Assembly (NCBI RefSeq): GCF_006345805.1
Contig: NC_043014.1
Coordinates: forward strand, 5,766,001 to 5,830,000
Reading direction: 5' to 3'
Length of the DNA: 64,000 bases
Source of the DNA: Octopus sinensis
Taxonomy: Eukaryota
How positions within the stretch are numbered: the stretch's first letter is position 1; each line of letters starts with the position of its first letter. Below the pieces are notes generated by a model, which was given only the letters and a program-made list of their open reading frames with translations, was not told the DNA's origin and ran no database searches. Shown here one piece after another: positions 13,665 to 59,790 of this stretch. The translations under genes were made by a program, and so were the position numbers.

Positions 13665-14164
13665 TCAGTATTTACTGCACACAACGCAGGTTAATTCTCG
13701 ACCATCGACATACGGTGGACATGGCAATGAACCACAAGCAGCCTGAACGAAATACAGTAGAGCTCCGTTTTCGTTCCTGTAACCTGCTGGATCAGCTTCT
13801 GGAGCATAATCCACACACACATAATCATGTCTGCCCTTATGAGTATAATGCTCGGCCATCAAATATCCTGAATATTCAGCTGTCCAACCAGGGTAACACT
13901 GTGTCCTGGCTGGTAACATCATAACAACAGCAGGTTGTCGTGTCAAACAGACAGCACACGGAACGTTGTGATTATGAATTGAATCAGCGTTAGCAAAAGA
14001 AAAGAGTTTATTTCTTGGGTATAAACCTAGTTCATATTCACTGCCATGAATGTAACCACTTTTTTCATCTCCTGTCGTATAATTGGCCCAAATGGGATCG
14101 ATGGGTAGACATAAGTAATTACTTCCGCCACCTGTGAGCTCGAACTATTGTCCACCAGCCACAC
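13665..14164 (-). pseudogene. Gene copy B exon 4 (C4-like domain) with an in-frame TAG at 14145-14147
   Basis: Acceptor TTCTAG ends at 14165. Reads G-VAGGQ*FELTGGGSNYLCLPIDPIWANYT...CVVCSKY-TGA; same 500-nt length as the C exon. Confidence 0.85.
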
Positions 14165-15867
14165 CTAGAATTGGTAAGAATAAATCAAGTAAAAAAGATG
14201 TTAAGCAAAATTATATATGAAATAACGGAAACATTCATTACAATTTGACCCTTAAAAGAAATCATGCGTAGCCACGTGTGAACGAATTGTGGTGTATGTA
14301 TGTTAGTGTTTATGTGAGTGTAAGCTGTGTGTTGAGGTATGCATGAGATCGTAGCTGTGCATTTGCCTTCTCATCATATGTATATATATATATATATATA
14401 TATATATCGTAATAAGCAACTAGGATATATAGAGATGATGCGGTACGATTGTTTCATACAACTCCATTTATATATATATATATATGTTTTGTGTATACGG
14501 GCAGGTATTTCTGGTTACGGCGTGGATTATTATGTATGCTTGCATGGGGTAGGTGATTTTCGGTGAATGTCAATAGATGGAGAAAAAGAAAGATATTTTA
14601 TAACGCATGCACTCGTGTTTATCCGAAATGGAAAAGATGTTCACGTGTGAACGGGGATATTTTGGGTGGTGGAAATTGTTGGTGGTTTGAGTAGGACAAT
14701 ACGGGAGACGACGAGATGCAGAGAAGTGGTGGGTAACCGTCGATGAAATGTTGTTTAGTCGATCGTACGAGAGTCAGTGGCTAAACCTCTCGTTTAGACT
14801 CGGACGAATCAGGCTTACATAGACGTTATGATCACACAGACTTTTTTTCATGCAATACACAGAAACGAGGTGGGAGGAAAAATTGTGAGGTTCAGTGATG
14901 GCGTAGTGCTTAAGATGAATGGACGGCGGAGTCGGCGATCGATAAAGGATACGTGTAGGGTTTATGGAGAGCAGATTCGGAGCATTTTTAGGGATTGTGA
15001 GGTTGATTAGGGAAGCCGTTGGAAGCAGCAGATTTAGATTGGAAGTTTCGGAATTACCTTACAAAGATATACTGGATAATTAATGAGGTGATGTGGTGCA
15101 TGAAAAGAGCAAGGTTTTAGCGATAAGACGATTTCGGTGAACGGAGAAGAATAGAATTGCTTTCTGTACTCTGTTGTGTTCTCTCACTAATATTTAGTCT
15201 CTCTCTATTTTACTTAATGAATAAAGTCCTTAGCTTTTTCCATCAATTACAGTATGTGGCTTGTCCAGTCCTCATTCTACATTCTGCGTTCATTTCATTA
15301 ATCGTTTACAGTCACTGTCATCAATTCTAATAGACTCTTTTCAATTTAGCCCACACCTACGATCACTGGGCACTCTAGTTAATGATAGTCAAGTGGCTAC
15401 TTTTCAGCTCTGGTCACTCACGTACAATACCACCATCCGTAGCCAGTACACTTGACCACCAGTTAGCAGCCTCGGTATTTGATATCTACAATCCAAAGCT
15501 GGTCAGCCTGAAATTCTTGATCGCCATGGTGGTTTTCAGTCCCGCCCCTATCTGTAATTTAACGTAGAGATATTCTGTGGTTAGACAATATCCTTTTCAC
15601 TTGGTCCGTAGCAGACAACATATAATATTGTGATTTGACCAAATACCTACAAAGGAGTAAGCAGTCTTGTGTAGTGTCTGTATAGTCTTCAGGTATAGAC
15701 GTTTGAAACGTGACATATCATAAAAGGATTTGAGAATGTTTATGTCAGACAACCCGACAAAGGGTGTGTGTGCGTGTGAGTGAGAGAGAGTGTGAGAGAG
15801 AATGAGGGGCGACAAAATGAGAAAGACAAAAAGAGAATGAGAGGTCAGAAATATAAAGTATACTCAC

Positions 15868-15942
15868 CGTCATATACAAGTTTTGAATAAGGAGGACATG
15901 TTGTTCTGCCCCACCGGGTATACAATGATCCGAGACCGGGTT
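15868..15942 (-). CDS. Gene copy B exon 3 (75 nt, phase 1-1)
   Basis: CACAG acceptor and GTGAGT donor; encodes (K)PGLGSLYTRWGRTTCPPYSKLVYD(G), the YxRWGRxxCP motif that opens this domain family. Confidence 0.9.
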
Positions 15943-55869: not shown

Positions 55870-57805
55870 CCCACCCATACATATATACACACACACATAC
55901 ATACATACATACATACATACATACACAAATACATACACACATACATACATACATATATATACATACATACACACTTACATACACACATATATACATACAT
56001 GCATACATACACACACACACATACATACATAAATGCATACATACATGCACACATACATACATACATGCATACATACATACATACATACCCCCATACATAT
56101 CTACATACACACACACACACATATATGCATACATACACACATACATACACACATACATACATACATATATACATACACACATACATACATACATACATAC
56201 TTTCATATATACATAGATGCATGCATATATGTATGCATGCATGTACGTATGAATGTAAGCATGTATATATCGATAGACACATATACACATACATCCATAC
56301 ATACATACATACATACATACATACATACATACATACATACATACATACATACTTGGTGGCTGCCCCCTCGTTATCGAGTAGGGCCATTGCACGAAGCTTA
56401 ATCAATGTTGTTATCGTGCTATGCCTGTGCATGAAGATTTTTCTTAAAGCGAGGAAAGGCTGTGCACTGAGTCAATCCCAGTCACTAAGCAACACCAGCC
56501 ATAATCCGAAAAGAAGAACAAGTCAACATCATCGGTAACCACTGAGCCGCAGGTTTTATATCGGAGTCATCCCAGTTACCTGAGTTACCTTCTCCTAGAA
56601 GGATGCCCTAACAAAGTCTAGGAGTCCTTCACTCCCAATGGTTTAACCGCGCGATCGGGTATTCAGTCCGATTATTTCTATGTCCCCGCGCATGATACAG
56701 CCTTAAGACATATATTGGATGGCCGTTGACTCTGAAGAGTTCCTCCGTCCTTTGACGGCTTTTTTTTCATCCCCCAGGGTGTCCAATAAACTCCCTCCTC
56801 ACCAAGCAAGCTTGGTGGGGTTGCCGGTTTAGTCGCCGACGACCCGACAATGCAACAGGTTGTACTGGGTTACATGTTACCAGTAGCCCTCGAAAGTGAC
56901 CTGACATACATACATACATGCATACATACATATATACATACATACATACATACATGCATACATATATACATACATACATACATGCATACATACATACATA
57001 CATGCATAAATGCATACGTACATACATACATACATACATGCATACGTACATACATGCATACATACATAGATACATACATACATACATACATGCATGCATA
57101 CATACATACATACATACATACATACATACATACATACATGCATGCATGCATACATACATACATACATACATACATACATACATACATACATACATACATA
57201 CATACATGCATACAAAAATATCCTGTTCATGTTGTTGAAATTCCAATGAAAGATACTTGGAACTAAGTTAGAAGCCGTCTCTCTTTCTGTTGGCCAGAAA
57301 TATTCTATTAAAACCGAATAATGACATTCATACATATTTTTAGCTAGTCATTATCACTAGCTTTGAATACTTTTCTTCTTGTTTTATAAATCATAGCAAA
57401 ACATACAGGTACAGTGTCTCCCATCTGAAACTCAATTCGCAAGTGCACCTTCCGTATGGACTGCATATGTACGACGGAATTCCATAGTTATGATTAAATT
57501 TTGTTAGATGAAGCATATTAAACCCCTCAGATATAGTTTGACCTAATCTAATATATATGTGTGTGTGTGTGTGTGTGTGTGTGTGTGTGTGTGTGTGTGT
57601 GTGGTGTGTGCGTGCGTGTGTGTATGTGTGTGTGTGTATGTGTGTGTGTTGTGTGTGTGTGCGTGCGTGTGTGTGTGTGTATGTGTGTGTGTTGTGTGTG
57701 TGTGTGTGCGTGCGTGTGTGTGTGTATGTGTGTGTTGTGTGTGTGTGTGTGTGCATGTGTGTGTGTGTGTGTGCATGTGTGTGTGTGTGTGTGTGTGTGT
57801 GTGTA
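55870..57805. repeat. (TACA)n tracts 55870-56350 and 56905-57210; (TG)n tract 57555-57805
   Basis: Direct inspection. Confidence 0.95.
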
Positions 57806-59293
57806 ACACTCTCGGTTTGGCCCTCGAAATAAGGTGAATTTGAAATAAGCTACAAAATAAATCTTACAGCCATGTCAGATTTCAACAAAGTCCCATAATT
57901 CTTCCTATTGTAATGGCGGGTTGCATATGCAGCTGCGCATGCTCTGTACAGCTTAAACACTTGGCGGTCGTTTTAACTGTCTAATTATGCCGCTGAATCA
58001 AAAGATGAATTTGAAGATCTACCAGCGTCCGTATTCTCTGCAATTGTTTACGATTTACAACCAGGAAAATATTTGTAATCTAGAGAAGCGAATGCAGATT
58101 TACCCATCAGGCTAATAATAGTGGGATAGTAAACATTAATAATCTTTAATCTTTATTGCAGCTTGATGCTGTTAACCGAAACCTTCGTTTATCTAACAAA
58201 TATTCGACACACTCCAACATACTGTCATGAATCCTATTGGATATAACGTGACGGTCACAACATCTCAGCCTTCTTACACACAGCATCCGTGCTTGCCCTG
58301 ACTATATTTTCTCTATTTACTCTCACTTTTATGGGTGTTGTATTCGTTTCGCATGAAATGTCTTCAGCTTCTAGGATCCATCTTTTCTTCGAGTCTGGTA
58401 TGTTTACGTAGATGAGTGAAAGAAATCGTCGTATTTGATGATCTCTGCTGTCGAAATTTTTCTGGTTGATTTCCTTTCTTATTATTGTATATCAGCGTTT
58501 AGTGTATGACGTGTATGTTGCGTGCATCGAGTTTCATTTTGTATCTTATTTTGAAGAGAGGTGGGAATTTTGTGATATAGATTTAGGTTGGCAGGACCAA
58601 TACTCATTTATACAGTCTTTTGAAGGATTGATCGTGTAAATTCCACACTCTCAGAAAGCTTAAATTGAACATTTTGTGATATTTCTAAAGTAGACGATAA
58701 ATAAGTTTTATAAGATATGGGTTAGGAATGGAACGGAAAGCTTTCCTGATTAATAACGGCAAATAGAATGGATTGTGTGGAAGTATCTGGTTGTTGTTGA
58801 AAGAATCAGTTAAGTTCCGTGCGAAGTAATGTAGCGGTTCATGGGTCCTTGTCAGAAACCGAGTTGTAATTTGAAAACCAAGATGCCTGAAATAGTAGCG
58901 TCGAGTATTAGATTTTCTAAGGCTGGGCATGAAAAGCTGATATAATTCTATGGTGGTACTTTATTTGGGGTTTGTTGAATCATGAGACAGAAGACAAAAT
59001 ACTGTTAAACAAAATAACATTTTATTTCAACGATAAGTTTGATAAACTGAAATCTTACAAAATGTTTTCTAGAATCATTTCGACAGATTTAGATTTTTCT
59101 TCTTTTTGAGGAGATTTCTGGCATTCTACGTCGCCTCTTTTGTATTGTTTGAATATCGTCTGTAAACTAGTACAACAGTTTATTGTAACGATAGATATAC
59201 TTTAAAGAAAATATTAGGTAACAAAATTGAAAATTTTGTTATTTATTGAAATTCACAGAGATATTTTCATATGGAACCGAATTTAATTTCTAT

Positions 59294-59790
59294 TTAATAT
59301 TTACTGCACACAACGCAGGTTAATTCTTGGCCATTGACATACGGTGGACATGGCAATGAACCACAATCAGCCTCAACGAAATATAATAGAGCTCCATTTT
59401 CGTTTCTGTAACCCGCTGGATCAGCTTCAGGTGCATAGTCCACACACACATATTCATGTCTGCCCTTATGACTATGATTCTCGGTCATCAAATATCCTGA
59501 ATATTCAGCTGCCCAACCAGCGTAACACTGTGGCCTGGCTGGTAACATCATAACAACAGCAGGTTGTCCTGTCAAACAGACAGCACACGGAACGTTGTGA
59601 TCATGAAGTGATTTAGCGTTAGCAAAAGAAAAGAGTTTATTTGAGTAGAATTCCAGTTGATATTCACTGCCATAAATGTAACCACCTTTTTCTACTTGTG
59701 TCGTATAATTGGCCCAAATGAGATCGTTAGGTAAACACAAGAGATTACTTCCGCCACCTGTGTGGTCAAAGAAATGTCCACCAGCCACAC
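59294..59790 (-). CDS. Gene copy D exon 4 (C4-like domain), open frame, one codon shorter than B and C
   Basis: Acceptor TTCTAG at 59791; VAGGHFFDHTGGGSNLLCLP...CVVCSKY-TAA. Confidence 0.88.

Follow-up and report, generated by a model that had tools for sequence, protein, structure and literature searches.

An octopus tandem array of genes with collagen-IV-NC1-like outer domains, with loops that probably change by exchange between paralogs and moderate positive selection

Gene content of the window

A 64 kb stretch of Octopus sinensis DNA (contig NC_043014.1, positions 5,766,001 to 5,830,000; hereafter the window) was mapped by tblastn with full-length relatives. It carries a tandem array of four-exon octopus genes for proteins that have a predicted membrane anchor and an outer domain resembling the NC1 domain of collagen IV. 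One of these genes is intact (C) and two are broken (B and D). We consider it probable that the variable loops of the outer domain change rapidly through exchange between paralogs together with moderate positive selection, and that the exon encoding the membrane anchor is kept identical largely by homogenisation.

All introns in the array are GT-AG. A bacterial or phage origin was dismissed given the eukaryotic sequence and these canonical introns. Gene C, on the minus strand as are B and D, is the only intact gene in the window. The coding part of its exon 1 (55050..55193, MDFAQ...EEKSKT) encodes a hydrophobic stretch at residues 15-33, the predicted signal anchor, and exon 2 (49577..49628, NRFISKKSLDDKPDDTP) encodes a linker that is disordered in the structural model. 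Exon 3 (46836..46910) is 75 nt long, runs from phase 1 to phase 1 and could be skipped in frame. Exon 4 with its stop codon (44711..45210) is the only NC1-like exon in the window that is fully intact and belongs to a complete gene. Gene B comprises the coding part of exon 1, for the predicted cytoplasmic tail and signal-anchor helix (24030..24173), a diverged exon 2 (18639..18690, KRFIPKNFFDDKPDDTP), a 75 nt exon 3 (15868..15942, KPGLGSLYTRWGRTTCPPYSKLVYD) and an exon 4 for the NC1-like domain (13665..14164), codon 7 of which is an in-frame TAG at 14147-14145. The ortholog of B in Octopus vulgaris, designated Bv, has two exon-4 frameshifts in place of the TAG; the lesions differ between the two genomes, and B is a pseudogene. 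Exons 1-2 of gene D lie past the window end. Its exon 4 with stop (59294..59790) retains an open reading frame (ORF), with a 1-codon deletion in the third of the variable patches described below, and its exon 3 (62416..62489) carries a frameshifting 1-nt deletion within an A-run. The same deletion is present in the O. vulgaris ortholog (L001 3058-3135) and thus predates the split of the two genomes, exon 4 being nonetheless open in both. No gene is called at this ortholog in the O. vulgaris annotation, and D is likely a pseudogene. A preliminary description of the locus, made by reading the DNA, had recognised the stop in B, which our map confirms, and had not seen the D frameshift. The nine peptides it quoted all fall on the minus strand inside the last-exon ORFs of B, C and D, and its span of 13665-59790 runs exactly from the end of the B stop codon to the first base of D exon 4.

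Incomplete copies accompany these genes. At the left end, the last-exon 3' end of an additional paralog, A1, is truncated by the window start (1..150, plus strand; 49 aa and a stop, 88% identical to C residues 118-166 by tblastn), and positions 1-1790 are 94% identical to the inverted stretch 59443-57654. An orphan signal-anchor exon, A2, follows on the plus strand (4315..4458), its translation 100% identical to that of B and C exon 1; in the tblastn map of the window, exons 2-4 do not follow it on that strand. Together with the intergenic sequence, the A1 tail and A2 form an inverted paralogous block (1-4808, plus strand, and 5240-9636) that is 89-95% identical to several units of the array. 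The matching O. vulgaris position holds a complete extra gene, P0005, oriented as B, so the two genomes differ structurally at this end. The window aligns collinearly with O. vulgaris OX597833.1 (~11.49-11.56 Mb), with ~2% noncoding substitutions. This distance (about 2.1-2.4% mismatches) resembles the ~2.9% that separates O. vulgaris from O. sinensis at another locus, and it places the window in the vulgaris group but outside the OX597833.1 assembly. A degenerate exon-4 fragment 3' of gene C (41757..41961, minus strand; ~50% identity, with stops inside) has kept its position in O. vulgaris (L001 23131-23350), where gene model P0001 splices into it and so omits the real C-terminus, apparently an annotation error. 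The further O. vulgaris copies Bv, Jv and Kv have exon-4 frameshifts or truncations (L003 5159-5654; L005 21923-22412; L006 22443-22799), so that pseudogenes account for a substantial part of the array. An intact C, the pseudogenes B and D, an orphan exon 1 and a degenerate fragment would fit an array that evolves by birth and death.

Several repeated features lie between and within the genes. The odd N-termini of the O. sinensis RefSeq models P0007 and P0002 match a segment repeated in intron 2 of each gene copy, partly with stops (48383-48321, 17415-17356 and 63884-63804; 48845-48731 and 17875-17655), and may be alternative first exons or repeat-derived annotation artefacts. Every last exon has on its 3' side, and every exon 1 on its 5' side, long microsatellites of the (TGTA)n/(CATA)n and (TG)n/(AC)n types (2140-3896, 24590-26513, 42662-43107 and 55876-57804). 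These delimit the units of the tandem array and could serve as substrates for unequal exchange. The interval between B and C contains two retroelement copies, at 27018-28932 (plus strand, with an inverted duplicate at 27480-30175) and at 30466-33670 (minus strand). Their ORFs match the reverse transcriptase family RVT_1 (E=2e-7) and, weakly, GIY-YIG (E=0.016), matches that point to Penelope-like elements as the probable identity of both copies. In the second copy, a high GC content (about 50-54%) and a strong GC skew account for a composition anomaly at 30-34 kb; the first has a near-identical relative elsewhere in O. vulgaris (L003 23241-28315, 97%).

Fold and architecture of the encoded proteins

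The best protein matches to the genes of the window were proteins of ~255 aa named 'short-chain collagen C4-like' in O. vulgaris, O. sinensis and Octopus bimaculoides, followed by proteins of Argonauta, many bivalves, the shell-matrix protein Hic24 and Lingula. At least 30 proteins bear this name across the three octopus species, and the family is widespread in molluscs and brachiopods. Among O. sinensis proteins, none closely matched C or D. A peptide of the family is present in the O. vulgaris ink proteome (PMC10142993), the sole hint of function and the only literature on the family in cephalopods that our search returned; a search for papers on Hic24 brought up nothing relevant.

The fold was assigned from the AlphaFold2 (AF2) model of a close O. 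vulgaris paralog, P0012, whose exon 1 is identical to that in the window (mean predicted local distance difference test score, pLDDT, 83.8). The model comprises a helix at residues 16-49, a disordered stretch at 45-60 and a beta-rich domain at 72-255. A Foldseek search of PDB structures with this model returned collagen IV NC1 for all of the best 29 matches (E=2.2e-6, probability 1.0). The ectodomain has 10 invariant or nearly invariant cysteines, one in exon 3 and nine in exon 4, and among 16 copies from three species no change is seen at any of the 9 Cys of exon 4 or at 11 of its Gly. Octopus members lack Gly-X-Y repeats, no run of four or more being present in any cephalopod member checked; 11-14 such repeats are confined to a few distant homologs, and a conventional N-terminal signal peptide is present in many bivalve members. 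The octopus proteins are collagen-less and NC1-like, and the name given to them in databases is a misnomer. Residues 15-33 form a hydrophobic 19-mer (Kyte-Doolittle hydropathy, KD, 2.1-2.7), preceded by a charged 14-residue tail, which suggests that these are probably type II membrane proteins with an N-terminal signal anchor. Exon 1 would thus supply the signal-anchor helix, preceded by a short tail in the cytoplasm, exon 2 a disordered stalk, and exons 3 and 4 together a disulfide-rich beta domain (10 Cys) with the collagen IV NC1 fold, the collagen triple helix having presumably been lost from these proteins in the octopus lineage.

The closest known proteins, the spongin short-chain collagens (Exposito 1991; Aouacheria 2006; Fidler 2017), consist of a short collagen domain and an NC1 domain homologous to that of collagen IV (PMC5395295). 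The spongin NC1 has ten cysteines, of which 7 are in common with collagen IV and 3 are spongin-specific (Fidler 2017, PMC5395295), and is said to be without the domain-swap region (PMC5395295). The octopus proteins share the homologous C-terminal domain, and the cysteines of their ectodomain, compared by count, come to the same number, 10. They differ in having no Gly-X-Y collagenous domain of any kind, a predicted internal signal anchor in place of a cleavable signal peptide, and genes that lie in large tandem arrays with hypervariable loops. Neither the collagen-free anchored form nor the arrays and hypervariable loops are described in the literature searched. Compared with collagen IV NC1 itself (PDB 1M3D, 1LI1 and 5NAX; Pfam C4), the octopus domain has the same fold by Foldseek and lacks a detectable sequence match, the HSQ motif and an attached triple helix.

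Sequence exchange and probable selection in the array

Exon 1 (48 aa) has the same translation in A2, B and C, as the preliminary description had stated. At the nucleotide level B and C agree at 135/135 positions and A2 has one synonymous difference. The protein is identical in eight copies from two species, with two synonymous singletons alone (nucleotide diversity, π=0.0035). This near-identity extends beyond the coding sequence: among copies, π≈0.024 in the 360 nt upstream of the ATG, compared with 0.08-0.15 in intron 1. Exon 1 also differs at about 15-20% of residues among O. bimaculoides paralogs. Because the upstream sequence is near-identical and the O. bimaculoides paralogs differ, exon 1 is not an intrinsically invariant anchor. 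Its identity is largely that of a homogenised 5' block of ~500 bp, produced by concerted evolution or by recent spread, and purifying selection acts in addition. The preliminary description had allowed that recent gene conversion might explain the identity, and such homogenisation accounts for most of what we see.

Variation in exon 4 is concentrated in short patches. Hypervariable columns, set independently by column entropy in 21 proteins of O. sinensis and O. bimaculoides, fall into five patches at exon-4 residues 6-11, 31-40, 46-55, 61-65 and 104-110. Among B, C and D, 21 of the 25 hypervariable columns vary compared with 24 of 141 others (Fisher p=1e-10), bearing out the earlier view that differences cluster between an invariant Cys/Gly framework. 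The three patches then proposed are all real (21/28 columns vary, against 24/138 elsewhere among B, C and D), and two more had been missed. In the confidently modelled beta-rich ectodomain of P0012, all five are loops between strands.

Exon 4 has a mosaic structure. The proportion of synonymous differences (pS) at codons for the same amino acid is 0.02-0.07 at codons 61-95 and 141-165 and 0.26-0.37 at codons 101-145. Copy Hv matches Fv completely (100%) over nt 201-300 of exon 4 and Ev at 99% over nt 401-498, whereas its best match reaches just 83-90% in nt 1-200 and 301-400. More generally, nearest neighbours switch between exon-4 segments, and 41% of informative site pairs display all four gametes. 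Identity among B, C and D is 93-96% over the 100 nt of intron that immediately precede exon 4 and only 83-88% over the opening 200 nt of the exon.

Nucleotide divergence between each window copy and its O. vulgaris ortholog, with flanks of ~3 kb, was 22% in patches, 3.4% in non-patch exon 4 and 2.2% in flanks for the pseudogene pair B/Bv; 12.6%, 2.6% and 2.6%, respectively, for the pseudogene pair D/Dv; and 7.9%, 0.8% and 1.4% for the intact pair C/Cv. The loops thus turn over 4-10 times faster than neighbouring introns. The framework keeps pace with the flanks in the B and D pairs and lags behind them in C, as would be expected if C is functional and B and D are not; the proportion of nonsynonymous differences (pN) between C and its ortholog outside the patches is 0.003, against 0.014 in flanks, indicating purifying selection. 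In patch 1, 11 of 14 nt differ between B and Bv, B there resembling the paralog Ev and Bv resembling Iv. The fastest patch turnover being found in pseudogenes, the alignments carry what is best read as a signature of short-tract gene conversion and not of selection on those copies. For the intact pair the sources appear mixed. The ESIHD tract of Cv is identical to that of several paralogs and suggests conversion, and His33, Gln40 and Thr42 of C, unique among 14 copies, suggest point substitutions. Loop turnover also differs strongly among lineages of the family, as a lineage represented by O. bimaculoides P0021 and an O. vulgaris copy (L009 18056-18544, L010 26492-26980) is near-unchanged between these distant species, patches 3-5 included, and differs mainly in patches 1 and 2.

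Whole-exon pairwise ratios of nonsynonymous to synonymous change (ω, by the NG86 method) of 0.42-0.82 are too coarse to be informative and mask heterogeneity among sites. Codon site models, which the preliminary description had proposed as a check, rejected the nearly neutral model M1a in favour of M2a, which allows positive selection. With 8 intact genes the log likelihoods (lnL) were -1677.8 and -1659.5 (likelihood ratio test statistic, LRT, 36.5; ω2 6.8 at 5% of codons), and with 13 intact genes from three species -2650.4 and -2614.8 (LRT 71.3; ω2 6.5 at 5% of codons). The neutral class of M1a held 30-38% of codons. Exon-4 codons 7, 9, 35, 47, 48, 105 and 108 had a posterior above 0.8 with 13 genes, placing one or two selected codons in each of the three patches first described and two more in a missed patch. 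When segments were given their own trees with the 13 genes, the test was significant for codons 1-30 (p=0.002), 31-66 (p=1e-5) and 104-166 (p=0.011) and not significant for codons 67-103. None of 16 simulations under an M1a null exceeded 5.99 (maximum LRT 4.8), and a mosaic null of five segments with randomly permuted tips exceeded it in 4 of 16 (maximum LRT 7.9).

Taken together, most patch codons are near-neutral and a handful show moderate evidence of positive selection, and the very high whole-exon ω derives partly from a locally raised rate and from exchange between copies. The diversifying selection claimed in the preliminary description is therefore supported only in part, by signs of it at ~5% of codons (ω2≈6.5; 2.2 with patches alone, p=0.006) and not for the patches as a whole. 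Patch-wide ω is 0.7-1.0, so that dN/dS is at or below 1 for most patch codons; the synonymous rate (dS) is raised, and two of the three copies it compared are pseudogenes.

Competing explanations and implications

On the reading we favour, exchange between paralogs would homogenise both the block of promoter, 5' untranslated region and exon 1 and the framework of exon 4, and the five surface loops would remain or become very different between copies. Loop 'cassettes' would be shuffled among paralogs, pseudogenes included, by short-tract gene conversion, and a second source of loop diversity would be positive selection favouring amino-acid replacements at about 7-10 loop codons. We infer that diversity itself is what selection favours.

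A number of results pull the other way. A PHI-type (pairwise homoplasy index) recombination test gave no significant result (p=0.07 and 0.3), incompatibility being high whatever the distance; mosaicism was instead judged from segment-wise nearest neighbours, dS heterogeneity and the ortholog comparisons. The site models used our own GY94-type codon likelihood (M0, M1a and M2a) with F3x4 codon frequencies, neighbour-joining trees and only 8-13 sequences. M2a treats the synonymous rate as uniform and recombination as absent (one tree per segment), and a breach of either assumption can inflate it. Synonymous divergence is ~2x higher in patches (pairwise pN 0.26 and pS 0.32, compared with 0.046 and 0.15 elsewhere), and patch-average ω is 0.68 by maximum likelihood under M0 and 0.8-0.9 by NG86, 0.7-1.0 overall. 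Restricting M2a to the 38 patch codons weakened the signal (ω2=2.2 on 27% of codons, LRT 10.3, p=0.006), because the patch-only tree absorbs the higher patch rate (tree length 9.0, compared with 1.7 for the framework). As regards the proteins, neither exon 4 alone nor the full spliced C protein matched a Pfam family, C4 (PF01413) included (E<=1, E<=0.1), a profile of the family alignment found nothing among PDB sequences at E<=1, TM-scores to collagen IV NC1 are low (0.32-0.42), and the membrane topology is predicted from hydrophobicity and the model alone.

On an alternative reading, old variation would simply be moved between copies by short-tract conversion with no positive selection at all, the ω>1 class being an artefact of block replacements, akin to multi-nucleotide events, and of the locally raised rate. 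Several observations favour such cassette shuffling: pS and pN are both raised in patches, the pseudogene pairs B/Bv and D/Dv combine the strongest patch-restricted divergence with a non-patch region at the flank rate, neighbours switch from segment to segment with four gametes at 41% of site pairs, Cv shares its ESIHD tract with several paralogs, and the signal falls to ω2=2.2 when patches are analysed by themselves. Yet that patch-only test is still significant (p=0.006), the mosaic nulls reach an LRT of no more than 7.9 against the observed 36-71, the intact C has nonsynonymous states absent in the 13 other copies, and conversion alone leaves unexplained the mostly nonsynonymous cassette divergence at codons 7, 9, 35, 47 and 48. 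We regard shuffling without selection as unlikely, though it is the strongest of the alternatives.

Relaxed constraint, in which unconstrained loops of dying copies drift neutrally against a conserved disulfide framework, would accommodate the pseudogene status of B and D, a patch ω of about 0.7-1 and the 30-38% of codons in the M1a neutral class. It is already contradicted by rate, since neutral sites cannot outpace flanking introns: ortholog divergence is 8-22% in patches compared with ~2% in flanks, and identity between paralogs is 83-88% at the start of exon 4 (200 nt) beside 93-96% in the adjoining 100 nt of intron. Furthermore, M2a fits much better than M1a and the framework of the intact C is under strong purifying selection (pN 0.003), making decay a poor and quite improbable account. 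That the assembly itself has produced false mosaics and false lesions from collapsed or chimeric paralogs is harder still to credit. The region is rich in repeats, both microsatellites and retroelements, and its lesions include single-base changes such as the D exon-3 deletion in an A-run, with the Bv frameshifts found in the other assembly; however, the independent chromosome-level O. vulgaris assembly has the same gene order, exon structure and D exon-3 deletion, and the orthologous flanks are collinear with ~2% mismatches. Paralog exchange with moderate positive selection at a few loop codons thus remains the explanation in which we place most confidence.

The NC1 domain of collagen IV is a recognition module whose variable regions set the specificity of chain assembly. 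With this background, the inter-strand position of the loops in the model and the selection signal suggest that they may form a ligand- or partner-binding surface. The immune, allorecognition or chemosensory role put forward in the preliminary description is unsupported speculation. A bolder scenario would have an NC1 module turned into a family of membrane-anchored, collagen-free receptors, its five loops diversified combinatorially by conversion, with linked pseudogenes as donors, and by selection, to yield a germline recognition repertoire (immune, self/non-self or cell-cell) built on a fold not known to have had such a role before; we hold this to be doubtful. By analogy alone, tandem birth-and-death arrays with a framework and variable loops recall mollusc recognition families such as bivalve C1q-domain proteins and the fibrinogen-related proteins (FREPs) of snails, although the fold differs and the octopus proteins have a putative membrane anchor. 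Conotoxins, likewise of a different fold, offer a comparable pairing of a conserved N-terminal signal exon with a fast C-terminal exon under conversion plus positive selection.

The locus provides a clean natural example of homogenisation and diversification side by side in one gene, and illustrates how paralog comparisons that include pseudogenes can overstate 'diversifying selection'. The NC1 domain of spongin and collagen IV is regarded as a structural module for assembly of the extracellular matrix, and here the same fold would occur in a collagen-free and membrane-tethered form. If its loops do bind something, these genes would constitute a new cephalopod recognition family beside the expansions of protocadherins, G-protein-coupled receptors and zinc-finger proteins.

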